Below, in pieces: positions 2,418 to 37,243 of a stretch of DNA of 64,000 nucleotides. The stretch is from the NCBI RefSeq assembly GCF_000142905.1, contig NW_013657607.1, positions 36,066 through 100,065 on the forward strand, written 5' to 3'. Numbering within the stretch: the stretch's first letter is position 1; every line of letters starts with the position of its first letter. The notes beneath the pieces are model-generated. The model was not told where the DNA came from. It ran no database searches and saw only the letters and a list, made by a program, of their open reading frames with translations. Source of the stretch: Thecamonas trahens ATCC 50062 (Eukaryota; Protista; Apusomonadida). Made by a program: the position numbers and the translations under genes.

Positions 2418-5400
2418 ATGGATGATGAGATTGAATTTGGAGAGAGCATGTGCGTGTGCGACTTGATGGGCATCACCGACGTTTGCATGTGTGGTTCTGG
2501 CTTGGCTGTCCCTCCTGGAAATGGCGGGAACACTCGCGCGTCTTTCTCTGTCGCTGACGAGCGAGCGGCGAGTGACCTCTGCCGTTCTTCCGGCCACCTG
2601 GCCGGTGGGCAGGGGCATGGTGTGGGGGCGGACGGGGAGGGTGAGAGGGACGAAAACGGGACCATAGACGGGAAAGAAGCTGTTACATGTGAGGACGCGT
2701 TTGCAGACATGCTCGTGGACGCTATCCTCACACAGCTCCATCCCAACTCTGCCATCCCTCCGCGCGTGCCGCACCAAGTCACGCCTTTCTCGCCTTCCGA
2801 CAACCATGGCACTCGGCCCGCCAACAACAACAATTGTTCAGCCAACGATTATGCTCATCCCGCCAACAACAACAATCGTTCAGCCAACGATTATGCTCAT
2901 CCCACCAACAACAACAATTGTTCAGCCAACGATTATGCTCCGCCCGCCAACAACAACAATTGTTCAGCCAACGATCATGCTCATCCCGCCAACAACAACA
3001 ATCGTTCAGCCAACGATTATGCTCATCCCGCCAACAACAACAATTGTTCAGCAAACGATTATGCTCCGCCCGCCAACAACAACAATTGTTCAGCCAACGA
3101 TTATGCTCATCCCGCCAACAACAACAATCGTTCAGCCAACGATTATGCTCATCCTGCCAACAACAACAATCGTTCAGCCAACGATTATGCTCCATCGGCG
3201 GCGCCCACACCCATCCCTGACCGCAGCTCGGCTCCGCCGCCAAGCTCGTCACTCGCAGCGACAAGATCGCATCATGGAGAGGATGCTCAGGGGAGCGCCC
3301 ACGGGCTGCCGACGACGCCACTGCTGGCCTCGTCGCTGCCGAGCGGCATGACGGTGCTGGCGGACAGATCGGTGACGACCACCGAGTCGCCCGTCCGCCG
3401 CTCATCGTCGCTGACATGCTCGACGCTCCGCACCTCGTCCGAGACCCTCGACGAGATTGAGGACGCAGACCCGACCGACGGCGATGCGTCCGACTCGGAG
3501 CTCGACTCGGATCCACTCCACGTCGCCTCGATCTTCCTCTCGGCCGTCACCAAGCGCTTTGCCGGCGCCTTTCCTGCTGCCGCCGCCGCAGAGCCTGCCG
3601 TCGACGCCGCGCCTGCTGCCGCCATCACGTCGATGGCGACCTCGCTTGCGGGATGGACGTGCGCGGCAAAGGCTGCCAAGTTGGCTGTCGCAGAGCGGAC
3701 CGCCGCCAACGTTGCTGCCGCCGCTGCAGCCATGCCCGACGACTTGCCGACCTCGCCCTCGAGTCCGTCGAGCCCGAGCAGCCCCACTCAGCTCGGCTCG
3801 CCGCCGCTGGCTGCCTCGTTCGCCATTGCCTCGCTGGCCCAATCGTCGTCGTCCTCGCTCGCCACCTCTGAGTCGACCGAGCTCCTCGGCGGGTCATCGT
3901 CGGACGATGACGCTGACGACGACGACGACGACGACGATGACGGCGGCAATGACGGCGACGGCGACGACAAAGGTGACGGCGGATGGGTCGATCTCGGCTC
4001 GTCGTCGCTCCTCTGCTCGGTCTCGCCGTACACGGCAGCGCTCTGCGCCGACGCCCGCTGGATGTGCACCCTGGCGGCGCTCGACGCAGCGGCCAAGCCT
4101 CTGGCAGCGTCGGGCATTGCCCACGCCGTCGCTGTCTGCGGGCCGGCGCGCATCAACGCGCTCTGCCGGGTCCTGGTCGTCACGCCGCAGCCAGAGGCGC
4201 TGACCGCAGCTGCAGCTGCGTCGGCGCTCCTTGCTGCCTTTCCGCGCACCCGCATCGCGAGCCCGGCCACCGCAGCCGCAGCCGCCGCGCCGCACATGTA
4301 CGCCCTTGTCGCCGGCGACGCCACCATCTTCCATGAGTACGCGACGCAGCGGCGGCAGCGGGCCGAGCTGCCGCACCCGCTGGCGGGCCTCCCGCAGGCG
4401 CGGATCCGCCACGCCGACGCGCTGGCAGCGCTGGCAGCCCTCGGCGACGCGCCGCCAGACGACCTCGTCGAGGCCATCACCACGGTCGTCGCCGCCCTCG
4501 CCGCCTTCTTCAACGTCTCGCCGAGGCTGGTCACCGGCCAGCGGCGGCGGCCCGGGGCGCCGCCGACAGAGCTCCTCCTCGCCGCGCTTGTTGCCGCCCA
4601 GGTGGTCAACAGCTACGTGGCGTCACAGCTTGTCGCCGCCCTCCACGCCTTGGTCGGCTCATCGGCGCTCGCTGCCGAGGCTGCGCCGGTAGCAGCGCCA
4701 ACCATCGCCACGCCGCTCGCGCACATGGCGGCGGACATGGCGGGCGGGATGGCGCGGTGCGGCGCGGCGGCGGCGCCGCGGGCACTGGACACATCCAACG
4801 CGGCGCTCCTGGCGGCGCTTCCCTTTCGTGACGCTGGGTACCTCGCGGCGGCGGCGTGGCGGGTCAGCCTCGACGGCATCTCCTCGCCAGTCTGCACCTA
4901 CGGCATGGCCGGGACCCGCGGCCCGCCGCGGCGGTACGCCGGGCTCGGCATCGGCATGGGCGCGCCCGTCCGCGGAGCGTGCCACCTCGGCGCCGCCATC
5001 CGGGAGATCGACGGCGAGGCATGGCCCGAGTTCCTCGCCTCGCGCGATGCCTTCTGCGCCCGCTATCCGGCCTACCGCGCCGTCTTCTACTCGGCCACCA
5101 CCGATGAGGTCCGTATGCTCGCACCCCAGGCCGTGGGCCAGCTGTTCGGCTCGGCGGTGCTGGCCGGCAACGCCCGCGTCCGCGTCGGCGCCTTTGACTT
5201 TCTCCTCGCCGACGCCACCGCCCCGCACGAGGTGGCCGTCTCCGTCCTGGCGCGGGCGCTCTTCCACGGCGGCGCGAGCGGACGCTCGCCACATCCGGGC
5301 GGCGTGCCCGCCGCTGATCTGGTCAAGGTCTTCTACCTCAACAAGATCCACGTCTTCCTCGTCACCCACGCCGTCCACGGCCCGCTCCTCGCCGACGCCC

Positions 5401-7690
5401 TCCGCGCCGCGCCCCCAACCTCGGCAGCGCCACTCGCCCTTGATCCGTACTCCTTCTCCCTCCACACTGTCCTCGCCCTCATCACCTCGCCCGAGGACGC
5501 CTGCCCGCGCGGCTACGTGGCCGAGCACCTGCCGCCGCTGCCGGCTGCGGTCATCGCGCCGGGAGACGTCTCGCTCGCCGCCTCGCCGCTCGGCTTGGTC
5601 CGCACAGGCCGCGGGCGGGCCTTTGTCGAGCCGACCGCCAAGGGCGGCCGCCTCTCGGCCCGGCTTGCCCTCCTGAAGAACGTGCTCTTCTGCATGCGCG
5701 CCGGGATGCGGGCCAAGGTCGACAGCGCGCTGGCGGCGCAGCTGGCGCACGCGCCCGATGGGCGGACCATCGTCGACCTCACGCTGGACGTCCTCCGCGG
5801 CATGGAGCTGCGGATGTCCGAGGCGCCGGCGATGCTCAAGGCCGGCCTTGTCCACCTGCTCGTCGCCCGCATCGACGACGTCGTCGGCACCGTCTGCGCC
5901 GACCCGGCCATGACCCACACCGAGCTGCTGGCCACCGCCCAGCCGCAGCTCGCCACCATCTATGCCAAAGCCGCCAAGACGCCATGCCCGGTCAAGGCCT
6001 TTATCACCGGCATCCTCCGCAAGCAGTGGCGCTGCGGCCGCCGCCTCAGCCCGGACGAGATCCTCGACGCCCAGATGTGTCTGCCGACGAGCGTGGTGAG
6101 TGGCGGGCGGGCGCGGTCGTGGTCGCGGACGCGGTCGCGGACGCGGTCGTCGTCGGCTGCCGGGCACAAGGGCCTGGGCCTCGGGCGCAAGCGGTCCAAG
6201 AGCGGCGCCATTGTCACGGCGCTGAGCGAGGACGGAGGAACGGCCGGCGAGCAGGGCGATCTCGAGGCGCTCGTTGTCCCGTCGCAGCTGCCGGGCGCCG
6301 GCGACGCGCCGCTGTGGTACGACGCGGCGCTGGTGGGCCTCGTCACCGCTGGCGACGCCGAGGGCTTTGCCAAGCTCCCGCACCGGCTGCTGATGCAGCG
6401 GATGCTGTCGGACATGGACTTTGGCGCGTGCGCCGTCGGCAGCAGCGCGCTCAAGACAATCCTCAAGGCGGCGACGCCGATGACGCTGCGGACGCTTGTC
6501 CTCCGCAACGTGGCGGTGCTGACGGACGTCCTCCTCGAGCCGCTGCTGGCCAAGACGCCGCATCTACAGGAGCTGGACGTGAGCGGCGGGGTGGAGCTGG
6601 TGACGGTGGGGCGGGTGGCGGCGCACTGCCGGCTCTCGCTCGCTGTCCTCCGGCTCGTCGGCTGCGTCCGCATCCCGCTCCCCGAGCTCGACCTCATCGA
6701 GGCTACCTGCACCCGCCTCCGGGCCGTCCACCTCGGCCCGAGCCACTCGAGGGACCTGTACTCGCCGGGCGCTACGTGCGCAGCCCATCCGCGGTGCCTG
6801 GTCACGGGCGCGCCGCACATTGTGTGGGCCCATCTGCCGCCGGGCATGCGTCGGGCGCTCGCCGCCTTTGCCGTCCCGCCGCCCTCGGCCACGCCGCGCG
6901 CCCTCTCGGCCTTTGCCTCGCGCATCCGCGTCGACCTGGCGTCGGCCGACCTCGCCGACGCCCTCGTCGCCAACATCGCCGTTGTTCTGCCCACCGCCGA
7001 GCGCATCTCCGCCCTCTCCATCGCCGACAACCCGCGCCTCACGGACGCCTCGCTCCTCCCGCTCGCCCGCGCCTTTGCCGCCAACGACTGCATCGTCGAG
7101 CTCGACGTCTCGGCCAACCCGGGCCTCTCGCCGCTGGCCACCATTGAGCTCGATGCCCTCCGCGCCACTCTCCTTGCCGACATCGGCCGCGAGCTGGTCC
7201 TCTCCGGCAGCTGCTGGGCCTCTGCCCGCGCCCTCTGCCCGGCGCAGGTCCCCTCGCCGCTCCCGCCGCGCTCCGTCCTCGCCGGCGAGGTCACAGCCGT
7301 CGCCGCCGTCTCGCCCACCGCCGTCATCGTCGGCTCGGCCGGCGGCAAGCTGGCCGTCATCGACTCGGCCTCGGGCTCGTCGCGGGTCGTTGACATTGTC
7401 CTCTCCTCGCCCGTCGTCGCCCTCACCATCGATGCTCCCCGCGGCAAGGTCCTCGCCGCCACTGCAGCCGGCCGCGTCGCCGTCCTCGCTCTCGCCTCGT
7501 GGCGCCTCCTCCGCATCCTCGACATGACCGCCGCCACAGATGACGCCGCCGTCACCGATGACGAGGTCTCGACCGAGTGCGTCACGCCGACAACACCGAC
7601 GACTCCCTCGGTGGCGTGGTCGTCGTCGGCGGCCTCGTCGCCCGCGCCTTCGCCCAAGCCGCTCACGCCGACGACGCCTTCATCGGCGGC

Positions 7691-26332: not shown

Positions 26333-29300
26333 ATGAACTTCCACACGCCGTTTGTCTCGGGCGCAACGCTCCAGGCGCAGCCGCACACACCGTGGCCGGG
26401 CAGCGACCGGCTGGCGTACACGGAGCCGGCCGGCGGCAAGGCGGCCGGCTCGTCGGCGGTGGCGGCGCTGGTCAACGTCACGACGGGCAAGGTGCTGACG
26501 CGGGTGTATGAGGCGGCGGCAGGCGCGCTCCGGGCGGTGCTCGCGGCGCGGGCGGGCGACCGGGCGGCAATCGACCGGTGGACGCGGGCGGCGGCGGCGG
26601 AGAACGCGGCGCGCGGGCTGAGCGTGGGCGACGACGGGTACCTCTCGGTCCTCGGGGTGGGCGCATGCGGGCGGACGCCGCTCGGCCCGCTGGGCGAGGG
26701 CTGGCGGACGGGCGGCGGGGCGCCGGTGGCTCCGCTCCCGCCGCATCTGCGCGGCTTCCACGTGACGCTCTTCGGCCCGCCGGACTCGGCCAAGCTCGCC
26801 GTCAACGCCATGAACGCCGCCGGGCGCAAGCTGCCGGGCGAGCCGGCGCTGGTGGCCGAGCTCGTCGCCGCCGCGGGCATGGTCCCCAAGTGGGGCGCCG
26901 ACGACGAAGACTCCAAGACGCCGCTCTTTGGCGACCTTGCCGCCGCGGCGCACCACCTCAATGCGTGCTTTGACGGCAGCCTGGAGACGACCGACGCGGC
27001 GTCGGGCAAGCACTACGCCATCGCGCCGGCCGAGCCGGCTGCGGGCGTCTTCCCCTCGCTGCCCATCAAGCGCATCCCGGGGCTGGACCTGCCGTGCCTC
27101 GCCGTGACCATTGCTGACGAGGCGGCTGCCGGTGGCCGTGACACGGTCCCGTTGCACATGCTCGACCTGGTGGCGCACGTGGTGGCCAACGCGCACCGGC
27201 CCGAGGCGCTCACCTTTTACGTGCCCAAGCTGGAGAATGAGGAAGAGGCCGCGTACCTCTCTCTGCTCATCGGCGCGGTGGAGGAGGCCATTGTGGCCCT
27301 CGGCGTGGCGCCCGACTACGTTCCGGGCACCATCCGCGTCATCCTCGTCCTGGAGAACCCGCGGGCGGTCTTCCGCGTCCACGAGATGATGGATGCGCTG
27401 TACCCGTACTTTGCCGGCGCCTCGCTCGGCTGGCACGACTACCTCGCGTCGACGGCGCGCCTCTTTGCCCACGACCCGCAGTACTCCATCCCGGTCAAGG
27501 CCGACCCGGACATTGTCATCAAGCACATCAAGGAGTCGCACGTCATGCTCGCCGACGTCGTCGGTGCTCGCGGCGGGCTCAAGATCGGCGGCATGTACGG
27601 CATTCTCCCGTCGTCGCGCGAGCTGGCCGATCCGTCCATGCAGGTTACCCTCATCGGCTACGTCCGCGACGTGGTGACCCAGCTCAAGCGCGGGCTCGAC
27701 GGCTTCTGGGTCGCCCATCCCGACTTTGTCCGCATCGGCATCGCCATTGTCCAGGCGTGGCGGAGCGACGCGCTCCCCGCCCTCATCTCGGCCCTCATCC
27801 TGGACCCGGCGTCGGCTGCCGAGCTGGAGGCCTTTGTGGCCGGGCCGGACATCGACGGCCTCGCGGTGGACGACCCCAAGTACCCGCGCGCCCTCCTTGC
27901 CGCCGACGTCGGCGTCTCCAACGTTGTGGCCAACTCAGACGAGGCCGAAGTCCGGTACAACATCTTCCAGGCCCTGCAGTACCTCGCCGACTGGCTGGTG
28001 GGCAACGGGTGCGTGGCGCTGCCGACAACTGTCCGCGGCGTCGCCGTCCGGGTCATGGACGACCTCGCCACGACCGAGCGCTCGCGGTGGGAGCTCTGGG
28101 CCGAGCTCTTTCACGGCCGCGTCGACGTCTACGACTACCTCCGCTTTGTGGAGGAGGAGCTCAACTACATCCGCCGCGACAAGACCGACGGCCTCAAGGC
28201 TGTCCAGGTCAAGTGGGCCCGCGCCGAGAAGTGGTACCCAGTCGCCGCCAACATTCTTCTCCTCCTCACCCTGCCCACGCCCGACGGCTCCATCATCGAG
28301 TTTGCGCCGCGCCTTCTCCTGCCGTTTACCCTCGACGCGGTGCGGAGCGCGGCCGATCCGTGGGCGGCGGCCACGGCGCTCGAGCCGGCCAAGTTTGCGC
28401 TCCCGGCCCGGGTCCTCCGCTGGCGCACTCTCTTTGCCGCCATCGCCCACCCGCGCCTTGCGCTCGCCTTTTCGCACACCAACTTTCCCGATGCCGGCCG
28501 TGTCGCGGCCTACCTCCTCGACGAGCCGGATACTCGGCTGACGGTCGACGACGTCATCTACGCCGCCGACTTTCACGGCGACATCGGAGCTGCCGCCCGT
28601 GCGGCCGCTCACGAGCAGGCCGAGCAGGCGGGAGTCGCCGGCTCGGGCCTCGAGGGCGAGCTTGTGGCCGGCGCTGAGGCGTACGCCGCCAAGTACGGCT
28701 TCAAGTTCCTCATCTCGGCTGCTGGCAAGTCGGGCGCCGAGCTCCTCGCTGAGCTCAACACCCGCCTCCACGACTCGAGCCCCGAGGCCGAGCTTGCAGA
28801 GGCCTCGGCGCAGCTCACCGCCATTGCACTCCGCCGGCTCCGCGGCGACGACTCGGTCTCGGCGTCGACGGCCGAGTGGCTTGTGGCGCTCGCTGGGTCG
28901 CACGGCGTCGAGTCTGTTGGCTACGCCTGCCTCTCGCGCGGCGACACGCTCCTGGAGCCGCCGACTGCCGCTGCCGAGTCGATGATCAAGCACTCGGTGC
29001 TTGAGGTTGTGGCGTCGCGGAGCGATCTCGAGTGGCGGGCGCCGCTGCCACAGGTGGTCGAGGCGCAGACGGTGGTGGCTGGTGCGTCGGCATGCCCGAC
29101 CTCGTCGCTCTTCCAGATGGCCTCGATGTCCAAGACACTTGGCACCGCGCTTGCACTCGAGTACTTTGTGGGCACGGCCTCACGGTTCCTGCCGAACGCC
29201 GTGCCGGTTGTGGGCTTTGGCCTCGAGACGCCGGTGGCGGCGATGCTCGCCGCCTGCGGCTCGCCGTTTGTCCTCGAGCTCGACGAGAGTGTGCCAGGCG

Positions 29301-31366
29301 CCGACGCGAGCTGGCTCGACGCGCTCACGCTCTCGCACCTTGTGGACCACTCCGGGCTTGGCCAGCCGTACGTCTTTGGCCTCCCGTCATGGGTGGCTGC
29401 GTCGGGTGCGCCGGTTGAGCTGATGGAGGGCAAGACGCCCGGGGCGATGGAAGCCGGCTACGCGCCCATCAAGGTGGGCAAGGCGCCCGGCTCGCAGTTT
29501 GGCTACTCGGGCGGGGCCTTTATTCTCGTCCAGCACCTGCTCGAGGCGTTTTCGGGCGTGAGCATTGTGGACTTGATGGAGGCATGGCTCCCGCAGCTCG
29601 GGCTTGACCCGACGACAGAGCTTGTGTTTGGCGACGTCGACGCGGTCCTCCCGGACGGGTACACAGCGGTGGCTGGGGCGCGCGACTCGAAGGCGCCGGT
29701 CCCGCGGCTGCATTTTCCGGCGCTTGCCGCCGGCGCGTGGGGTACGCCGACCTCGATCCTCAAGTTTACGGCGGTGCTCGCGCAGGCGTTTGCCTCGCCG
29801 GGTGCGACGTACCCGCTCTCGCACGACACGGCGGTGCAGATGCTCGGCGCGCCGCTCGATCGCGGGGCGGTGGCGTTCCAGAACGCACGGGCCGGGCGTG
29901 GGCTCTTTGTGGTGCAGGCCGGATCGAACCGGGTCATGATCCACCAGGCGTCCAACGACGGGTACACCGGCATCTACGCGGTGGTCTTCTCAGGCCCGGA
30001 CGCCGGCTCCGGCTTTTGCACGGTCTCGACGGGCGACCTCGCCGGGGTGTACACCAACGTGGAGATGGCGCGCAACGTGCTCCGCGGGCTCGAGTGGACG
30101 GGCGTGGACCTCGATGCCTTTGCGCCGCTCGAGTCCTTCGACCCCTCGCCGTGGCCGGCGCACCAGATCGTGAACCAGGCGTACCGGCAGCTGCTGTTTG
30201 CGGCGTTTGAACCGGCGGTGCCGGAGACCATTGCGCGGCCGGCATCGACGCCGATCCGCGAGCTCAACGAGTACGACGTGGCATCGGGCGCGGCGCTGGT
30301 GGCGACGTCATCGGAGGCCTTTGCGCCGGCGAGCAACCTTGTCGAGCCGCGGGTGGCGGTGTTTGACCCCGAGGCCTTTGGCCTGCAGGGCAAGATCATG
30401 GACTCGTGGGAGACGGCGCGGCACCGGTCGTACCCGCCGCATCCGGGCTACGACACGGCACACTTTGCGGTGACCAAGAGCCCGGCGGCCGTGGGCTACG
30501 TCTGCATCTCGACGCTCTTCCACGACGGCAACCACGCGCAAGCGGCCAGCGTCGAGTACGTGCCGGTCGGCGGCGGCGAGTGGCGCGAGCTGCTGGGCAA
30601 GATCCCGCTCGATGGGCACTCTGAGCACTGGTACGCGCTGGAGACGCCGACGCTCCCGGTGGGCGAGTTCCGAGTGCTCAACTACCCGGACGGCGGCATC
30701 ACCCGGATCGGGCTCTACCCGCCGGGCACGGCCGGGCTGCCTGCGGGCCTTGCGCCTGGCGCGCCCGTGGTGGTCCGGTCGGCGGCGCCGATCCCCAAGG
30801 TCGTTCCGGTCACGCACCACATGGCCGAGGCATTCCGCGCCCAGGCGCGCGGCATCAAGCCAAAGGGCGCGCCGCTGGCCGACGCGGCGTGTCTGGCGGC
30901 CGGCGGGCTCGTCGTCGCCGCGTCCAACGAGCACTACGGCCCGGCGGTGGCTGCGCTCGCGGCGTACCCGCCGATGGGCATGTTTGACGGCTTTGAGTCG
31001 GCGCGCTCGCGGGTGGCCGGCCACGTCGACTGGCTGGAGATTGCCCTTGCCGAGCCGACAGTCCTCGGTGCCGTCGTCCTCGACTTTGCCTTTTTCCGCA
31101 ACAACAACCCGTGGCGGGTCACCGTCCTCGCTCTCCGCCCGGGCGCCGACGGCAGCGCCGACTCTGACTGGCTCCCGCTCGTCGACCGCCTCCTCACCAA
31201 GGAGTACGCTGGCAACGTTCTTGTCGTCCGCGCTGGCGACCACATCGCCCTCTCGGCGTCGTACGCCTGGTCGCAGCCCATCACTCGGGTCAAGGTCATC
31301 TCCGAGCCCGACGGCGGCATCAACCGTGTCCGTCTCCTCCGTGCGCCGCCTGCCTCTAAGCTCTAG
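26333..31366 (+). CDS. Peroxisomal four-domain fusion: malate synthase / OHCU decarboxylase / beta-lactamase-family serine hydrolase / allantoicase, with PTS1 (SKL)
   Basis: Uninterrupted 1677-aa ORF. Malate synthase (about 26735-28400): ADDEDS, KRIPG, YVPKLE, VLEN, GWHDY, GGM, DGFWVAHP, WLVGNGCV, MDDLATTERSR. OHCU decarboxylase (about 28420-28842): FHGDIG, EQAGV, YAAKYGFKFLISAAGKS, IALRRL. Serine hydrolase (about 28870-30090): FQMASMSK, YSGG, HQASNDGY. Allantoicase (about 30270-31345): GKIMDSWETARH, YPDGGITR, MFDGFESARSR, PDGGINRVR. Ends SKL-stop. Confidence 0.93.
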   Translation: MNFHTPFVSGATLQAQPHTPWPGSDRLAYTEPAGGKAAGSSAVAALVNVTTGKVLTRVYEAAAGALRAVLAARAGDRAAIDRWTRAAAAENAARGLSVGDDGYLSVLGVGACGRTPLGPLGEGWRTGGGAPVAPLPPHLRGFHVTLFGPPDSAKLAVNAMNAAGRKLPGEPALVAELVAAAGMVPKWGADDEDSKTPLFGDLAAAAHHLNACFDGSLETTDAASGKHYAIAPAEPAAGVFPSLPIKRIPGLDLPCLAVTIADEAAAGGRDTVPLHMLDLVAHVVANAHRPEALTFYVPKLENEEEAAYLSLLIGAVEEAIVALGVAPDYVPGTIRVILVLENPRAVFRVHEMMDALYPYFAGASLGWHDYLASTARLFAHDPQYSIPVKADPDIVIKHIKESHVMLADVVGARGGLKIGGMYGILPSSRELADPSMQVTLIGYVRDVVTQLKRGLDGFWVAHPDFVRIGIAIVQAWRSDALPALISALILDPASAAELEAFVAGPDIDGLAVDDPKYPRALLAADVGVSNVVANSDEAEVRYNIFQALQYLADWLVGNGCVALPTTVRGVAVRVMDDLATTERSRWELWAELFHGRVDVYDYLRFVEEELNYIRRDKTDGLKAVQVKWARAEKWYPVAANILLLLTLPTPDGSIIEFAPRLLLPFTLDAVRSAADPWAAATALEPAKFALPARVLRWRTLFAAIAHPRLALAFSHTNFPDAGRVAAYLLDEPDTRLTVDDVIYAADFHGDIGAAARAAAHEQAEQAGVAGSGLEGELVAGAEAYAAKYGFKFLISAAGKSGAELLAELNTRLHDSSPEAELAEASAQLTAIALRRLRGDDSVSASTAEWLVALAGSHGVESVGYACLSRGDTLLEPPTAAAESMIKHSVLEVVASRSDLEWRAPLPQVVEAQTVVAGASACPTSSLFQMASMSKTLGTALALEYFVGTASRFLPNAVPVVGFGLETPVAAMLAACGSPFVLELDESVPGADASWLDALTLSHLVDHSGLGQPYVFGLPSWVAASGAPVELMEGKTPGAMEAGYAPIKVGKAPGSQFGYSGGAFILVQHLLEAFSGVSIVDLMEAWLPQLGLDPTTELVFGDVDAVLPDGYTAVAGARDSKAPVPRLHFPALAAGAWGTPTSILKFTAVLAQAFASPGATYPLSHDTAVQMLGAPLDRGAVAFQNARAGRGLFVVQAGSNRVMIHQASNDGYTGIYAVVFSGPDAGSGFCTVSTGDLAGVYTNVEMARNVLRGLEWTGVDLDAFAPLESFDPSPWPAHQIVNQAYRQLLFAAFEPAVPETIARPASTPIRELNEYDVASGAALVATSSEAFAPASNLVEPRVAVFDPEAFGLQGKIMDSWETARHRSYPPHPGYDTAHFAVTKSPAAVGYVCISTLFHDGNHAQAASVEYVPVGGGEWRELLGKIPLDGHSEHWYALETPTLPVGEFRVLNYPDGGITRIGLYPPGTAGLPAGLAPGAPVVVRSAAPIPKVVPVTHHMAEAFRAQARGIKPKGAPLADAACLAAGGLVVAASNEHYGPAVAALAAYPPMGMFDGFESARSRVAGHVDWLEIALAEPTVLGAVVLDFAFFRNNNPWRVTVLALRPGADGSADSDWLPLVDRLLTKEYAGNVLVVRAGDHIALSASYAWSQPITRVKVISEPDGGINRVRLLRAPPASKL

Positions 31367-31399: not shown

Positions 31400-31553
31400 T
31401 GCTTGCCCCCCCTCTGCCCCCCTCTGCCCCATCACCGTATCCCATCCCCCTCTGCCCCCCTCTGCCCCATCACCGTATCCCATCCCCCTCTGCCCCCCTC
31501 TGCCCGATCACCGTATCCCATCCCCCCTCTGCCCCCCCTCTGCCCCCATCACC
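31400..31553. repeat. C-rich ~38-bp tandem repeat running into an assembly gap
   Basis: Repeated ccccctctgccccatcaccgtatcccat units abutting the Ns. Confidence 0.8.
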
Positions 31554-31813
31554 NNNNNNNNNNNNNNNNNNNNNNNNNNNNNNNNNNNNNNNNNNNNNNN
31601 NNNNNNNNNNNNNNNNNNNNNNNNNNNNNNNNNNNNNNNNNNNNNNNNNNNNNNNNNNNNNNNNNNNNNNNNNNNNNNNNNNNNNNNNNNNNNNNNNNNN
31701 NNNNNNNNNNNNNNNNNNNNNNNNNNNNNNNNNNNNNNNNNNNNNNNNNNNNNNNNNNNNNNNNNNNNNNNNNNNNNNNNNNNNNNNNNNNNNNNNNNNN
31801 NNNNNNNNNNNNN
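31554..31813. other. Assembly gap (N run)
   Basis: Run of N. Confidence 1.
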
Positions 31814-31888
31814 TCCCCTCCCACCCGATCCCCGTCAGGCACCCACTCCCCTCCCCCCCCCCCCCCCCACCGCAACCAACCAACCCCA

Positions 31889-32824
31889 ATGTCCTCCCTC
31901 CTCCGCGCCGTGTCAGGCGCCACAGCGGGCGTGGTGGCCATGACCGCCACCTACCCCCTCTCCACCCTCGCCCTCCTGGCCCAGACCGCCACACCGTCCA
32001 CGCCCGCCACACCGTCCACGCCCTCCACACCGTCCACGCCCTCGCTCGCCGAGCTGTACGCCGGCCTCCGCCCGGCCCTCGTTGGCATCGCCGTCTCCGA
32101 GGGCGTCTTCTACCTAGCCTTCTCCTCCGCCCGCTCCGCATACCGCGCCGCCACGGGCGCTGCCACCGGTGCCGCCCTCCCACCGCTGGCTCACCTCGGC
32201 CTCGCCGCCGCCGCAGGCATGGTCAACGTCCTCGTCACCAACCCCATCTGGGTCGTCAACAACCGCTGCATCACCGACCGCAAGGCTGCCGCAGACGCAG
32301 ACGCAGACGCAGACGCTGTCGCAGACGCCGGCCTGCTCGCCACTCTTGCCCGCATCGTGGCCGACGAGGGCCTGGGCGCGCTGTACAAGGGCCTGGCCCC
32401 GGCCATGGTCCTCGTCGTCAACCCCATCATCACCTACACCATCTTCGAGTCGCTCAAGCCGGCCTTTGCCCCGCTCTCGCGCCTCTCGCGCTTCCTTCTC
32501 GGCGCCCTGGCCAAGACCATCGCCACCCTCGCCACCTACCCCTACGTCGTCGCCAAGTCGCGCATGCAGGCCGACAAGTCGCGCCGCAACATCGCCGCTG
32601 GCAGCTCAGCCTCGGCCTCGGCCCGCCCAGCCTCGGCCCGCGCCATCCTCACCGACATCTACGCCACCGGCGGTCTGCCGGCCCTCTACGCCGGCATCGG
32701 CGTCAAGCTCCTCCAGTCCGTCTCCCGCAACGCCCTCCTCTTCCTCATCGAGGACGAGGTCTTCAAGACCCTGCTGCTTGTCCTCAAGCTCATTGCCGGC
32801 GCATCGGGCCGCGCTGTCGCCTAA
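31889..32824 (+). CDS. Mitochondrial-carrier-family (SLC25) transporter of the peroxisomal PMP34/SLC25A17-PMP47-PXN type (311 aa)
   Basis: Three carrier repeats: TYPLSTL, TNPIWVVNNR and TYPYVVAKSRMQ. Also EGLGALYKGLAPAMVLVVNPIITYTIFESLK and FLLGALAKTIATLATYP. The NPIWVV and LVxNP signatures are typical of the peroxisomal subfamily. Confidence 0.88.
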   Translation: MSSLLRAVSGATAGVVAMTATYPLSTLALLAQTATPSTPATPSTPSTPSTPSLAELYAGLRPALVGIAVSEGVFYLAFSSARSAYRAATGAATGAALPPLAHLGLAAAAGMVNVLVTNPIWVVNNRCITDRKAAADADADADAVADAGLLATLARIVADEGLGALYKGLAPAMVLVVNPIITYTIFESLKPAFAPLSRLSRFLLGALAKTIATLATYPYVVAKSRMQADKSRRNIAAGSSASASARPASARAILTDIYATGGLPALYAGIGVKLLQSVSRNALLFLIEDEVFKTLLLVLKLIAGASGRAVA

Positions 32825-33408: not shown

Positions 33409-35096
33409 CTATGGCTTGTGCTCAGCGGTCATGGCCACAAGTGCGGCCAGCCAGGCGCGGGCAAAGGCGGCGACGAGGTCGGCATCGACCAGCTCGGCAG
33501 CGTAGCAGACGACGGCAGAGAGCTCACCGCCGAGTGTCATCGTCCGCAGAGCAAGGAGGCCGTTTGAGCACGCGGCCGACTGGCCCCACACCGCCGACTC
33601 GATGACCGCGCCCGAGGTCGGCGCCGCCAGCGCATCAGCTGCGCCGAGGTTGGACACCTCCACCGTGGACTCGCGTAGATCGGCAGCCGCCGCCAGCGCC
33701 GCCTTCTCCGCCGCCATCCATCGGCTCGCCGGCGCCGGTACCAGCGGCATGAGGCCCGGCAGCCTCGCCGCACGGCTCATGCCGCGGACCAACTCGGCCC
33801 GCACCGCACGCGCCTCGGCCCACAGCGATGCGCCGCCGCCTCCGGCCACCGTCCGGCAGCCGCCGAGCGAGCGATAGATCGCCACCGACGACGAAAACGC
33901 CCCGAGATCGGCTGCCGGCGGCGGCGCGATGTCTGCTCGCAGCGCGTTGCGCGCCAGGGAGACCGGCGTCTCGATGCGGATGGCCAAGGTGTTGGCGGCG
34001 TCGTCGTCGGCGGTGACCTGACCACCGCCGCGCCGGCCGCCGCCACAAACGCGGCGTGGAACCGATGGGTCTGCCTCAAGCGCCGCCGCTCGTGCCGCGC
34101 TATCCAGTCCGCGCGGTGCCTCTCCGCGAAGGACTGGCTCGGTGAGAATGAAGGCAGTTCAGCTTTGCGGTAGCGATGCTCGTGAAGGACGGCGAACCTA
34201 TGGCTTGTCCGCCAGCCCGCAGATTTAACTGACCGACGCAAGTCTCAGATGAGCGTTCCGCCGCCAAGACACATCGTGCAACCGGCGGCCGATAAACCTT
34301 GTGCTTGNNNNNNNNNNNNNNNNNNNNNNNNNNNNNNNNNNNNNNNNNNNNNNNNNNNNNNNNNNNNNNNNNNNNNNNNNNNNNNNNNNNNNNNNNNNNN
34401 NNNNNNNNNNNNNNNNNNNNNNNNNNNNNNNNNNNNNNNNNNNNNNNNNNNNNNNNNNNNNNNNNNNNNNNNNNNNNNNNNNNNNNNNNNNNNNNNNNNN
34501 NNNNNNNNNNNNNNNNNNNNNNNNNNNNNNNNNNNNNNNNNNNNNNNNNNNNNNNNNNNNNNNNNNNNNNNNNNNNNNNNNNNNNNNNNNNNNNNNNNNN
34601 NNNNNNNNNNNNNNNNNNNNNNNNNNNNNNNNNNNNNNNNNNNNNNNNNNNNNNNNNNNNNNNNNNNNNNNNNNNNNNNNNNNNNNNNNNNNNNNNNNNN
34701 NNNNNNNNNNNNNNNNNNNNNNNNNNNNNNNNNNNNNNNNNNNNNNNNNNNNNNNNNNNNNNNNNNNNNNNNNNNNNNNNNNNNNNNNNNNNNNNNNNNN
34801 NNNNNNNNNNNNNNNNNNNNNNNNNNNNNNNNNNNNNNNNNNNNNNNNNNNNNNNNNNNNNNNNNNNNNNNNNNNNNNNNNNNNNNNNNNNNNNNNNNNN
34901 NNNNNNNNNNNNNNNNNNNNNNNNNNNNNNNNNNNNNNNNNNNNNNNNNNNNNNNNNNNNNNNNNNNNNNNNNNNNNNNNNNNNNNNNNNNNNNNNNNNN
35001 NNNNNNNNNNNNNNNNNNCGCCCACCACGCCCATCCGCCGCGCCGCCCCGGCACACCGCGCCCGACCACCTCCACCACTTTGCGCGCCACTTCCAT
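33409..35096 (-). CDS. Probable CoA-dependent acyltransferase (alcohol acetyltransferase / PapA5 condensation-like); spans the gap, frameshift at about 34017
   Basis: The C-terminal part has FHAAFVAAAGAA, PVSL..., VEVSNLG, AVWGQSA and MTLGGELSAVVCY, as in CAT-like acyltransferase C-lobes. The HxxxD region would fall in the N gap, so it cannot be seen. The 5' start is tentative. Confidence 0.5.
34308..35018. other. Assembly gap (N run)
   Basis: Run of N. Confidence 1.
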
Positions 35097-35236
35097 GCTG
35101 TTGCTGCGGTGGCGGCGCGGGAGTGCGGTGCTGCCGCTCTTCGACGCGCGAGGCGCTTGCCGCTTGTATTGAGGAGCAACGGTCGTGGTGTTGTCACGGT
35201 AGATGTGTGCAAAAATATTTTGCTTCGTATCAATGT

Positions 35237-37243
35237 TTACTCCTCGCCACCTGGCCCGCTGTCCGAGTACTCGTCGATGGCGACAATGGCGCCCGAGAGT
35301 GCCGAGGCGGTCAGGCCGGGGTGGGCGGCGTCGAGCTGGGCACGGAGCTGGGCGACCGAGGTGTTGGCGGCGCAGCCGAGGAGGTGGCAGACCGCGTTGG
35401 GGACGTAGCCATCGGGGAGGAGGTGCTCCGACGAGCTCATGACGACGACAAAGGCGGCGAGGACGGGCGGCGGGAGGTAGGCGGCGGCGAGCTCGATGAC
35501 ACGGACAACGCCCTTGCCGAAGCGGACCGAGTTGAGGACGGCGGCGGCATCGCGGAGGTTACCCGACGATGCGATGGCCACCGCGCCCTTGGTGTACGCC
35601 CCGGCCTCGAGGTAGACGGCCCAGGCGAGCGAGGGCGCGCCCATGTCAAGCAGCACGTCGCCGAGAGAGGGCACAAGCTCGTTCGCCCGCATGACGAGGG
35701 TGAAGAACTTGACGGCGTCGTACGGCGCGCCCGTCGCCACATCGACCGCGTCCAGCGCCGCCAGGATCTCCTCCGCCGCCAGACCCTCGCCGCCGGCAAA
35801 GAGCGCGTCGAGATAGGCCGAGAGGAGCTCCACGCCGCCGCCCTGCGCCACCGCCAGCGCACGCCGTCGCTCGTCCATCATGACCAGCGAACGGAGCGCC
35901 CGTACCGCTCCCGGCACATCGCCGTCACCCGCCGCAGCAGCCGCCCGCTCCGCCAGCTCCGTCGCCAGCGCCGCCGCCTTCAGCCGCTCTTCGGACACAA
36001 TGGCGAGCTTGGCCTCGGCCAGCGGACCGTACGCCGCGTACTCGCCTCCTGCCGCGTGGAAGGCGGCACGAACGTCGGGCCACGGCAGGCCGCCACGATG
36101 AGCAGCGGCGGCGATGAGGCTCCGCCGCAGCGGCGGTGAGTCCACTGCCGCCAGTGGCAGCCCGCACACCGCCGCACGCTGCACGCACGTGTACCACTTG
36201 TCGTCCTGCGGCTGCGTCTGCGTCTTGCCCAGAAGCTCGATTTTGATGACCTCGCCAAGTGCAAGCACCGGCACCACCGCCACGTCGTTTCCGCTCTCCT
36301 CGGCGTGGATCTCCGCCGAGACGTATGTCCACACCCCGTCCGGGCCCTCCCTCGCCACGCCGTCGCCTCCTGCAATCGCGCCCGGCGAGATGGCCGCTCC
36401 TCGGTCGCCGGGCGCCATGACCAGCGCTCGCGATGAGGTCGCGGACACAGCCTCGCCCTCCTCTCCCTCCTCACTCTCCTCGCCCTCGCCCTCGCCCTCG
36501 CCCTCGCCCGAGTCACGCGGGAGAAAGCCGATCGAGAAGCGGTAGGTCACCGGGGCGTACGTCGGCTCGCCCGGCTGGAAGACAGCCTGGAACGGCTTGA
36601 TGGCCAGGTGGGTGACGATGGCCGGCGCGTCGAGGCGGAGGAGAAGGTACTCGTTGGCATCGGCTGTCTCGGAGCCGATCGACGACCAGAACGACATCGA
36701 GTTGTCCAGCACCTCGCACGGGCCCTGGTCGACGTACCCGGCGCCGGTCTTCGGGTCGATGTCCACCGACGATGCGTCGGCTGCCTCCACCACCAGCGGC
36801 ACAACCCGCTCCGGTACCGCCAGCTTCTGCAGCGCCACGTACGCCTCGCGCCACTCGCTCCGCTGCAGCGGCAGGTTGCGCGCCAGCACCCTGCCGCCCG
36901 CCGACAGCCGCCGCCCATCGTCAGGGCCATCGCCGCCATCACCACCATCGCCGCCATCGCCGCCATCGCCGCCATCGCCATCCTCGCCGCCATCATCGTC
37001 GCCTTCGCCGTCTTGGCCGCCTTCGTCTCCGCCCCCACTTTCGCCATTGCCTCGGCCTCGGCCCGCCCCGCGGCCCTCGGCCCGCCCCGCCAGCGCCCGC
37101 CAGAGCGATCCGTCGCCGGCCGCCGCCCGCCAGCGGCGACTCACCCTGCTTGCCGCCGCCAGCGACACGGGGTCCAGGAAGCTCAGTACATGCAGCACAA
37201 GCTCGACGGGCAGCCCATACGTGCTTCCAAACGGGTCCTCCAT
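35237..37243 (-). CDS. F-box protein with a galactose-binding-like domain resembling the plant At4g00755 family, plus a helical C-terminus
   Basis: F-box LPVELVLHVLSFLDPVSLAAASRVSRRWR. Motifs SFWSSIG, IKPFQAVFQPGEPTYAP, WTYVS and IELLGKTQTQPQDDKWYTCV. ATG 37243 preferred. Confidence 0.85.
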   Translation of the reverse strand: MEDPFGSTYGLPVELVLHVLSFLDPVSLAAASRVSRRWRAAAGDGSLWRALAGRAEGRGAGRGRGNGESGGGDEGGQDGEGDDDGGEDGDGGDGGDGGDGGDGGDGPDDGRRLSAGGRVLARNLPLQRSEWREAYVALQKLAVPERVVPLVVEAADASSVDIDPKTGAGYVDQGPCEVLDNSMSFWSSIGSETADANEYLLLRLDAPAIVTHLAIKPFQAVFQPGEPTYAPVTYRFSIGFLPRDSGEGEGEGEGEESEEGEEGEAVSATSSRALVMAPGDRGAAISPGAIAGGDGVAREGPDGVWTYVSAEIHAEESGNDVAVVPVLALGEVIKIELLGKTQTQPQDDKWYTCVQRAAVCGLPLAAVDSPPLRRSLIAAAAHRGGLPWPDVRAAFHAAGGEYAAYGPLAEAKLAIVSEERLKAAALATELAERAAAAAGDGDVPGAVRALRSLVMMDERRRALAVAQGGGVELLSAYLDALFAGGEGLAAEEILAALDAVDVATGAPYDAVKFFTLVMRANELVPSLGDVLLDMGAPSLAWAVYLEAGAYTKGAVAIASSGNLRDAAAVLNSVRFGKGVVRVIELAAAYLPPPVLAAFVVVMSSSEHLLPDGYVPNAVCHLLGCAANTSVAQLRAQLDAAHPGLTASALSGAIVAIDEYSDSGPGGEE

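Follow-up and report, generated by a model that had tools for sequence, protein, structure and literature searches.

A single gene of Thecamonas trahens ATCC 50062, located within the 64,000-nt stretch of DNA analyzed here (the window), encodes a protein whose assignment to the lower urate/ureide pathway as a four-domain enzyme is supported by domain homologies, conserved catalytic residues, the operon context of its bacterial homologues and either/or gene distributions. Urate is degraded through HIU, OHCU, (S)-allantoin, allantoate and ureidoglycolate to glyoxylate, which malate synthase condenses with acetyl-CoA. Replaced or missing enzymes have been found repeatedly in this route, e.g. PuuE, PuuD and the vertebrate malate-synthase-like (MS-like) lyase. 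From sequence comparisons we consider it probable that the protein combines an OHCU decarboxylase, a beta-lactamase-fold allantoinase, an allantoicase and an MS-like domain serving the glyoxylate end, and that it is peroxisomal.

According to this proposal, urate oxidase and HIU hydrolase would act first and the single fusion polypeptide would take over urate catabolism thereafter. (S)-allantoin would be made by the OHCU decarboxylase domain (step 1), its hydantoin ring would be opened to allantoate by the beta-lactamase-fold domain using a Ser-x-x-Lys/Tyr serine-amidase mechanism (step 2), and urea and (S)-ureidoglycolate would be released by the two-repeat allantoicase domain (step 3). The N-terminal MS-like domain would form the glyoxylate end (step 4), acting as a lyase, a synthase, or both in one Mg/glyoxylate site.

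Structure and authenticity of the gene

The gene is a single-exon, stop-free ORF of 1677 aa plus stop on the forward strand (26333..31366), and it ends with the tripeptide SKL. The same ORF was recovered by ORF listing and by translation, in agreement with the initial annotation. Upstream of the ATG the frame stays open for only 23 in-frame codons, giving 1700 aa in total. The distinguished features are as follows.

26333..31366, + strand: whole CDS, four-domain protein; full-length homologues align over 95-100%
26333..28432, + strand: N-terminal extension and MS-like domain (residues 1-700)
27176-27745, + strand: Pfam MS_TIM-barrel match (residues 282-471, 57 bits)
27941-28180, + strand: Pfam MS_C match (residues 537-616)
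28538..28843, + strand: OHCU decarboxylase domain (residues 736-837, Pfam)
28883..30232, + strand: beta-lactamase/PBP-fold serine hydrolase domain, proposed allantoinase (residues 851-1300)
29084-29986, + strand: Pfam Beta-lactamase match (residues 918-1218)
30287..30718, + strand: Allantoicase repeat 1 (Pfam, starting at residue 1319; aligned to 1SG3)
30902..31339, + strand: Allantoicase repeat 2 (Pfam; aligned to 1SG3)
31355..31363, + strand: C-terminal Ser-Lys-Leu, type-1 peroxisomal targeting signal (PTS1), read from the translation

All the Pfam domain matches (MS_TIM-barrel, MS_C, OHCU_decarbox, Beta-lactamase and two copies of Allantoicase) exceed the gathering scores, and the four enzyme domains proposed earlier were thus all recovered. 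The NCBIfam equivalog cut-offs are missed by every domain of the fusion protein. The catalytic signatures, which had been described as intact, were confirmed by comparison with 3CUZ, 5UOU/3O7H and 1SG3. The catalytic residues of the MS-like, OHCU and beta-lactamase domains are invariant in 39 homologues sharing about 42-57% identity, a conservation far above chance expectation.

Within the OHCU domain, E764-Q765 corresponds to Glu87-Gln88 of the Klebsiella OHCU decarboxylase (5UOU/3O7H) and R835 to its catalytic Arg. These residues and H748, identified as the catalytic His by its motif position and not by alignment, are invariant in the family (39 homologues). The Pfam score of this domain is 59.6 bits (cut-off 24 bits), with only profile positions 48-155 of 155, i.e. 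the C-terminal two thirds, being matched; against NCBIfam it reaches 55 bits (cut-offs 124-139 bits). The Allantoicase profile (PF03561) matches twice, with a total of 132 bits, and both repeats align to yeast allantoicase 1SG3. The score with TIGR02961 (allantoicase) is 140 bits, the cut-off being 278 bits.

It is highly improbable that the gene is an artefact of misassembly or of bacterial contamination of the contig, or that it is dead. Its closest named homologues are bacterial and it is intronless, whereas the Thecamonas uricase gene seems to consist of several exons. However, the GC content of the gene (70%) is like that of its surroundings, and the adjacent genes seem to be eukaryotic, encoding a mitochondrial-carrier protein, a kinase, ankyrin and WD40 proteins and a cyclase. 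Moreover, the reading frame contains no stops, its catalytic residues are invariant, and the single-ORF layout is repeated both in three independent marine assemblies of a 56%-identical homologue and on a contig that also encodes UBR1 and spectrin-like proteins. In an independent estuary metagenome, coverage extends to 28 of 30 bins of the stretch; three DNA “joints” in these data, with sides under 30 nt, were disregarded. Seawater metatranscriptome libraries yielded ORF-matching contigs of 151-332 nt with 0-3 mismatches, some of them exact, scattered along the ORF, and none of the short contigs found spans a domain junction. The GC content of the genome is about 68%.

Genomic context, distribution and peroxisomal signal

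The genetic context was analyzed in 80 bacterial loci containing homologues of the four-domain gene. A PuuD-type urate oxidase gene (PF06181) is located nearby in 58 of them and an HIU hydrolase gene in 54, in 44 cases on the same strand and directly upstream. Other neighbours include XdhB (24 loci), XdhA (17), XdhC (16), a deaminase (7) and a cofactor-free uricase (5). Since the bacterial gene usually comes directly after those of urate oxidase and HIU hydrolase, and xanthine dehydrogenase genes are often adjacent, there is good support for its role in urate catabolism.

The Thecamonas genome encodes an HIU hydrolase and a uricase ending with SRL, and the fusion protein is the sole OHCU decarboxylase and the sole allantoicase found in it. 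This, together with the bacterial operons, bears out the placement of the protein in the lower ureide pathway made in the initial annotation. Searches of the same genome for AllB (top match a dihydropyrimidinase, 548 bits), PuuE, a cupin ureidoglycolate lyase, a further malate synthase A or G, and isocitrate lyase identified none of these enzymes.

The four-domain layout, suspected at first to be undescribed, proved not to be peculiar to Thecamonas. The same domain order is encoded in at least 243 bacterial species genomes, mostly of Bdellovibrionota and Planctomycetota, and the homologues have already been labelled automatically as “serine hydrolase” or “allantoicase/malate synthase/CubicO peptidase”. 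In the literature, no paper was found on the four-domain fusion or on a beta-lactamase-fold allantoinase. Urate-pathway enzymes are likewise fused in the bifunctional allantoicase/OHCU decarboxylase (NCBIfam NF010371) and in plant allantoin synthase (HIU hydrolase plus OHCU decarboxylase). Both of these are two-domain proteins, in contrast to the four domains of the Thecamonas protein, two of which belong to families not normally assigned to the urate pathway in bacteria. One of the carriers, Oligoflexus tunisiensis Shr3, is cultured, which renders the proposals made here directly testable. In marine ecology the gene could serve as a marker of picoeukaryotes and predatory bacteria that extract nitrogen from purines.

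In an unrooted FastTree phylogeny, the Thecamonas-type proteins with a PTS1 form a well supported clade of five members, at least partly eukaryotic, that is sister to all 85 sampled bacterial sequences. Given this topology and the lack of a root, no donor can be named for a transfer between bacteria and eukaryotes. The PTS1 consensus tested was a C-terminal [SAC][KRH][LM] conserved in orthologues. The C-termini of the five proteins are SKL, SKL, SKL, SRL and ARL, so all four nearest relatives of the Thecamonas protein retain the terminal signal noticed in it; among the bacterial homologues a PTS1-like tripeptide occurs in 3 of 80. The signal would direct the enzyme to the peroxisome in Thecamonas and these relatives, where the uricase ending with SRL would act too.

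The beta-lactamase-fold domain as a candidate allantoinase

Two classes of allantoinase are known: AllB, an amidohydrolase, and PuuE, a polysaccharide-deacetylase-like protein. None of the fusion protein domains shows homology to either in Pfam or NCBIfam, and to our knowledge no allantoinase function is known for the beta-lactamase fold. The initial annotation left the serine hydrolase domain without a role; comparative genomics suggests that it is the missing allantoinase.

The domain matches PF00144 with 44.6 bits and contains the motifs S931-x-x-K934, Y1058-S-G and H1204-Q-A, of which S931/K934, Y1058-S-G and H1204-Q are invariant; in the homologues the third motif reads H-Q-G/A. A sequence search of the PDB with this domain gave no match, and it was placed through its predicted structure. 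The AlphaFold2 model (pLDDT 82.8) was matched by Foldseek with a probability of 1.00 to 7SPN, 2QMI, 2EFU and AmpC. The nearest solved folds are family VIII esterases, D-amino-acid amidase (2EFU), SurE and class C beta-lactamases, which share the Ser-x-x-Lys, Tyr and His-x-Gly type motifs. They are only 12-18% identical to the domain, which, unlike them, always occurs in a purine-catabolic context, being fused to allantoicase or encoded beside guanine deaminase. As no characterized relative exceeds about 18% identity, its substrate is deduced from genomics alone.

In our census, in which most bacterial genomes are incomplete metagenome bins and one missing gene is thus weak evidence for any single genome, AllB was found above the cut-off in 1/50 of the four-domain genomes and PuuE in 0/50, the top sub-threshold matches being dihydroorotases and dihydropyrimidinases. 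For all genomes with a fused form the respective numbers are 1/67 and 0/67. Within one phylum, AllB is present in all nine genomes with a free-standing allantoicase, mostly encoded directly adjacent to it, and neither AllB nor PuuE was found in any of the 17 genomes in which allantoicase is fused to the beta-lactamase-fold domain (Fisher p = 3e-7). The domain holds the genomic position of AllB, immediately upstream of allantoicase. This complementary distribution makes it likely that the beta-lactamase-fold domain is an allantoinase.

The same is suggested by an unfused cluster (L120) comprising xdhAB and genes encoding HIU hydrolase, PuuD, OHCU decarboxylase, a beta-lactamase plus allantoicase protein and a cupin ureidoglycolate lyase. 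The only step without a gene in this cluster is that of allantoinase, and the only part without a role is the beta-lactamase domain. A stand-alone homologue of the domain adjoins a guanine deaminase gene. Searches for such homologues gave one match with the Thecamonas domain alone and 19 with a profile, most of them fragments on contigs of 1-2 kb. Two stand-alone homologues are located on gene-sparse contigs with uninformative neighbours.

Alternatively, the domain could be an amidase with a different substrate (ureidoglycolate or ureidoglycine), an esterase, a peptidase or a non-catalytic scaffold, with allantoin hydrolyzed by a promiscuous dihydropyrimidinase or an unrecognized enzyme. The absence of a close characterized homologue would fit this, as would the nature of the nearest folds (esterases, D-amino-acid amidase, PBPs and AmpC), the dihydropyrimidinases present in Thecamonas and some other carriers, which might hydrolyze allantoin, and the weakness of gene absence as evidence in incomplete bins. 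We nevertheless regard it as unlikely in view of the 9/9 versus 0/17 distribution of AllB and the location of the domain in the AllB position, the single gap in the L120 cluster, the invariant catalytic motifs, and the many Bacteriovoracaceae carriers in which no amidohydrolase match above about 125 bits was detected.

The allantoinase assignment denotes functional equivalence with AllB and PuuE and not membership of their families: the proposed reaction, (S)-allantoin to allantoate, would be the same, but catalysis by the beta-lactamase fold would be covalent, while that of AllB is metal-dependent and that of PuuE of its own type. If the assignment is true, it represents a third unrelated solution to one reaction and new chemistry for the superfamily, and many automatic “serine hydrolase” or “malate synthase” annotations would be corrected. 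The allantoinase step has apparently been taken over in this way in hundreds of bacterial species and some marine protists.

The MS-like domain and the glyoxylate end of the pathway

The MS-like domain is homologous to E. coli malate synthase A (AceB, 3CUZ) in both its TIM-barrel and C-terminal parts (E = 4e-21, chain positions 110-377 and 411-465), and it matches PF01274 with 57 bits and PF20659 with 32 bits. R247 (KRIPG), E341 (VLEN), D369 (GWHDY) and D577 (the second D of MDDLAT) correspond to Arg166, Glu250, Asp278 and Asp447 of 3CUZ, respectively, and are invariant in the 39 homologues. W459, the counterpart of Trp365, is invariant in the family, and so is the replacement of Arg276 by Trp367. 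The acetyl-CoA pocket of the E. coli enzyme is formed by Ile94, Thr95, Gly96, Met102, Met330 and Pro369 (PMC3112382). At these positions the Thecamonas protein has L146, F147, G148, L155, M421 and P463, i.e. identical or similar residues at five of the six, the exception being the change of Thr95 to Phe. Trp365 and the pocket are retained in Planctomycetota, Bdellovibrionota and the eukaryotic clade alike.

The domain scores 95.8 bits with TIGR01344 (malate synthase A), for which the cut-off is 594.5 bits. Canonical malate synthase A has 120 invariant positions, of which the domain keeps 50; the 70 that differ include Thr95 (replaced by Phe), Arg276 (by Trp) and Trp277 (by His). The cupin ureidoglycolate lyase was found in none of 63 four-domain genomes, and it adjoins both two-domain genes whose flanks could be read. 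No other malate synthase accompanies the fusion protein in 33 of 50 carriers, nor in Thecamonas, and in the remaining 17 a canonical malate synthase A is found, paired with isocitrate lyase. The MS-like domain occurs independently of isocitrate lyase, whereas the canonical enzyme of the same genomes is always encoded beside it.

Malate-synthase-like proteins of vertebrates are ureidoglycolate lyases (PMC10120013). The Danio rerio enzyme (MSL/UGL) is a free-standing protein with a mass of about 62 kDa and a PTS1, in which Trp365 is replaced by Met and the acetyl-CoA site is not conserved; the group has been reported as restricted to eukaryotes, with a diagnostic 2-aa insertion (PMC10120013). 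The Thecamonas-type domain has in common with it the malate synthase A fold, the glyoxylate/Mg site, the replacement of Arg276, the PTS1 and a place at the end of purine catabolism, but it keeps Trp365 and five of the six pocket positions, is fused to three enzymes and is mostly bacterial. The evidence thus points two ways: the pocket and Trp365 are synthase-like, while the loss of Arg276 and the absence of the cupin lyase are lyase-like. Such a mixture of true synthase and derived lyase features may bear on the evolution of the lyase from the synthase.

If the domain is a malate synthase only, ureidoglycolate would break down spontaneously or on the allantoicase domain, and the pathway would lead from OHCU to malate. 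This reading is consistent with the invariance of Arg166, Glu250, Asp278, Trp365 and the catalytic base Asp447, with the kept or conservatively replaced Ile94, Gly96, Met102, Met330 and Pro369 positions (PMC3112382), a site that the vertebrate lyase has lost along with Trp365 (PMC10120013), and with the 33 of 50 carriers (plus Thecamonas) that would otherwise have no malate synthase to remove glyoxylate. It is weakened by the profile score far below the malate synthase A cut-off, by the 70 changed positions, by the 17 carriers already equipped with a canonical malate synthase A and isocitrate lyase, and by the retention of an adjacent cupin lyase in relatives devoid of the MS-like domain, which suggests that the lyase step is indispensable; we give this reading less than even credence. 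We are equally tentative about the domain being a ureidoglycolate lyase only, equivalent in bacteria and protists to the vertebrate enzyme, in which case the pathway would end with glyoxylate and two urea, leaving the glyoxylate to be consumed by other enzymes. For this there is the precedent of a ureidoglycolate lyase with a malate synthase fold and a PTS1 (PMC10120013), in which Arg276 is also replaced; the four domains would then span four consecutive steps, and the either/or distribution of the MS-like domain and the cupin enzyme would be explained. However, Trp365 and the acetyl-CoA pocket are conserved in three groups of organisms, whereas the described lyases lack both and have been reported from eukaryotes only.

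The identification of the domain as a malate synthase, made in the initial annotation, agrees with the catalytic residues and the acetyl-CoA pocket positions, and is called into question by the lyase function of the vertebrate MS-like proteins, the score of 96 bits and the either/or relation to the cupin lyase; an end of the pathway at malate is plausible from the conserved residues. In a bifunctional version, (S)-ureidoglycolate would be bound in the glyoxylate/Mg site, urea would be eliminated, and the retained glyoxylate would be condensed with acetyl-CoA. The most far-reaching proposal, an OHCU-to-malate assembly line that includes a third (serine-nucleophile) class of allantoinase and such a bifunctional domain, releases no free glyoxylate, and belongs to a family shared by predatory bacteria, planctomycetes and protists that have acquired a PTS1, seems doubtful in this complete form. 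Intermediates may pass between the domains, and the four-step fusion would offer a natural system for the transfer of unstable or toxic compounds (OHCU, ureidoglycolate and glyoxylate) between active sites.

A dedicated malate synthase, DAL7, is clustered with the allantoin genes of yeast. The fusion protein has in common with DAL7 a genetic link to allantoin breakdown.

Domain architecture and conservation of the fusion

All four domains of the fusion lie in one reading frame, in which five Pfam models, every one above its gathering score, delimit the following features:

26333-31366, + strand: fusion coding sequence, one stop-free ORF of 1677 codons, last residues Ser-Lys-Leu
residues 282-471: MS_TIM-barrel (Pfam)
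residues 537-616: MS_C (Pfam)
residues 736-837: OHCU_decarbox (Pfam)
residues 918-1218: Beta-lactamase (Pfam)
two repeats: Allantoicase (Pfam)

Upstream of the ATG the frame runs on for only 23 codons; the start codon is credible because alignments with homologues begin at about residue 2-55. NCBIfam matches are to the expected families throughout, yet far below the equivalog cut-offs (malate synthase A, 96 bits, cut-off 594.5; allantoicase, 140 bits, cut-off 278), so each domain is a divergent family member. By homology the fusion belongs to the malate synthase, OHCU decarboxylase, allantoicase and beta-lactamase superfamilies and is no equivalog of characterised enzymes.

The catalytic signatures, described as apparently intact in the initial annotation, are so in alignments. 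Residues kept relative to E. coli malate synthase A (3CUZ) are Arg166 (R247 in the fusion), Glu250 (E341), Asp278 (D369), Trp365 (W459) and the base Asp447 (D577), and those kept relative to Klebsiella OHCU decarboxylase are Glu87-Gln88 (E764-Q765) and the catalytic Arg (R835). H748 is located in the His motif of the latter domain, and yeast allantoicase (1SG3) aligns with both allantoicase repeats. The listed residues of the malate-synthase-like and OHCU decarboxylase active sites are invariant among 39 full-length homologues (42-57% identity), as are S931-x-x-K934, Y1058-S-G and H1204-Q of the beta-lactamase-fold domain. Judged from these sequences, purifying selection acts on the presumed active site of each of the four domains.

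The gene has the same GC content (70%) as its surroundings in the protist assembly (131 contigs, 28.7 Mb), and its neighbours encode mitochondrial-carrier-family, protein kinase, ankyrin, WD40, TPR and cyclase proteins. The stretch is present in marine and estuarine metagenomes, and the closest homologue (56% identity) is likewise encoded by one ORF in each of three independent marine assemblies. Seawater metatranscriptome libraries contain short exact matches to the stretch, but none of their contigs bridges a domain junction.

A gene with three mitochondrial-carrier repeats (31403-32824, + strand; PF00153, 123 bits) begins about 37 nt past the fusion stop codon, in the same orientation, and could encode a peroxisomal cofactor carrier; no such gene was found beside the fusion homologues on two other loci (L001 and L099). 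At 34001-36000 GC falls to 44%, against 60-76% across the remaining window.

Distribution and urate pathway context

Among the candidates scored in a protein search with the fusion, 486 matched. All five Pfam domains were present in all but one of the 120 matches listed, the exception (P0055) missing only the OHCU_decarbox call. Named homologues among the matches listed come from Bacteriovoracaceae, Oligoflexia or Oligoflexus, and are annotated as 'serine hydrolase' or 'allantoicase/malate synthase/CubicO peptidase'. With one genome scanned per species, the layout was present in at least 243 species genomes, which belong mainly to Bdellovibrionota and Planctomycetota; the cultured Oligoflexus tunisiensis Shr3 is one of them. 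The four-domain architecture is real and encoded in a single ORF, but it is not unique to the protist.

In a tree of 90 sequences the fusion clusters with four metagenomic proteins (100% local support). The C-termini of these five are PTS1-like (SKL, SKL, SKL, SRL and ARL), as are those of only 3 of 80 bacterial sequences. The contig of one metagenomic member also carries UBR1-type and spectrin/CH-domain genes, so the clade is at least partly eukaryotic; in this unrooted tree it is sister to all sampled bacteria.

The urate pathway is well known, including two-domain fusions (allantoicase with OHCU decarboxylase, and plant allantoin synthase). On two long bacterial contigs, a PuuD-type urate oxidase (PF06181, a family shown to be a urate oxidase in PMC4562309) and HIU hydrolase are followed directly by the fusion gene. 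PuuD lies near it in 58 of 80 bacterial loci, HIU hydrolase in 54 (in 44 of them as the gene immediately upstream, in the same orientation), xanthine dehydrogenase subunits in 16-24, a deaminase in 7 and a cofactor-free uricase in 5. The protist genome has both uricase and HIU hydrolase, while the fusion is its sole OHCU decarboxylase and sole allantoicase. This purine-catabolic gene context upholds the reading of the fusion as a lower-ureide-pathway multienzyme, which is probably targeted to peroxisomes.

G000:C78:33441-34423 (locus L007, 1253-1639), - strand: uricase of the protist, apparently split into exons

The last uricase exon finishes ...SKLHSRL, with a PTS1-like SRL. The HIU hydrolase (C78:49306-49485) shares this contig, at a distance of about 15 kb, and has the usual YRGS ending. 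Published PuuD has a cytochrome c domain (PMC4562309), whereas the urate oxidases upstream of the fusion (L065, 8030-9586, and other loci) have in its place a weak C-terminal CarboxypepD_reg-like domain.

The missing allantoinase

Neither known allantoinase class was found in the protist genome: PuuE was not detected, and the top match to AllB is a dihydropyrimidinase (548 bits for TIGR02033). Of 50 bacterial carriers, one has an AllB above the cut-off and none has such a PuuE, the best sub-threshold matches being dihydroorotases and dihydropyrimidinases. The phylum of O. tunisiensis was sampled with 131 genomes, 33 of which have allantoicase. AllB occurs in all nine genomes with a free-standing canonical allantoicase, mostly immediately adjoining it (one AllB gene is truncated by a contig end), whereas neither AllB nor PuuE occurs in any of the 17 examined genomes in which allantoicase is fused to the beta-lactamase-fold domain (Fisher p = 3e-7). 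One of these 17 carries an unfused cluster, and a marine contig encodes a stand-alone homologue:

L120: xdhA, xdhB, HIU hydrolase, PuuD, canonical OHCU decarboxylase, [beta-lactamase + allantoicase], cupin ureidoglycolate lyase
L118, 524-4694 (TARA marine contig, GC 62%): 745-aa protein, C-terminal half homologous to the beta-lactamase-fold domain of the fusion

In the L120 cluster allantoinase is the one step between xanthine and glyoxylate that lacks a gene, and the beta-lactamase-fold domain is the only part without a role. A second two-domain gene has a cupin ureidoglycolate lyase 33 nt downstream, and the stand-alone homologue adjoins a guanine deaminase. Three catalytic motifs are common to the fused, two-domain and stand-alone forms. 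An AlphaFold2 model of the domain (pLDDT 82.8) has structural matches, with 12-18% identity, among family VIII esterases, D-amino-acid amidase, PBP homologues and AmpC. Acting as a serine amidase, the domain would open the hydantoin ring of allantoin, which is chemically reasonable. We infer that it probably performs the allantoinase step; by sequence, it belongs to neither known allantoinase family. A literature search found no description of a beta-lactamase-fold allantoinase or of the four-domain protein.

The L118 protein directly follows the guanine deaminase (TIGR02967, above cut-off), and its N-terminal ~350 aa gave no family match. Three genes from the L120 urate cluster lies a 717-aa class-V aminotransferase (3993-6143, - strand), which has the alanine-glyoxylate aminotransferase fold and is possibly a route of glyoxylate removal. 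A single in-frame TGA, in a similar position each time, interrupts the top amidohydrolase (dihydroorotase-like) match of at least nine carrier genomes (in Bacteriovoracaceae, e.g. G010:C93:906-2102, G033:C1:404291-405481 and G027:C3:280330-281547); it could reflect a recoded codon, a break common to these genes or an artefact of the alignment.

The malate-synthase-like domain

The vertebrate proteins called 'malate synthase-like' act as ureidoglycolate lyases; in them Arg276 is replaced by Ile, Trp365 by Met, and the acetyl-CoA site is unconserved (PMC10120013). The fusion domain is lyase-like in having Trp for Arg276 and His for Trp277, and 70 of the 120 positions invariant in canonical malate synthase A (11 proteins from the same genomes) are changed. 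It resembles malate synthase A in retaining Trp365. The acetyl-CoA pocket of the E. coli enzyme (Ile94, Thr95, Gly96, Met102, Met330, Pro369; PMC3112382) corresponds to L146, F147, G148, L155, M421 and P463, so that five of six positions appear kept or conservatively replaced.

No cupin ureidoglycolate lyase was found in 63 four-domain genomes, but a gene for it adjoins both two-domain genes with readable flanks. Of 50 carriers, 17 have canonical malate synthase A, each time adjoining isocitrate lyase, and these same 17 are the ones with isocitrate lyase; malate synthase G was found in none of the 50. No cupin ureidoglycolate lyase, isocitrate lyase or further malate synthase was found in the protist genome. 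This gene distribution argues that the domain supplies the ureidoglycolate step; the conserved CoA pocket speaks for continued use of acetyl-CoA. A synthase alone, a lyase alone and an enzyme with both activities are equally likely readings, each possible rather than probable, and some other function takes up the small remaining probability. The hybrid character of this domain and the probable new allantoinase are the two most interesting points, and both are directly testable in the cultured bacterium.

In addition to the fusion and a canonical aceB-aceA pair, O. tunisiensis has a third malate-synthase-like gene (G037:C1:3002428-3006070; 227 bits to TIGR01344), which adjoins a 753-aa isocitrate-lyase-like gene.
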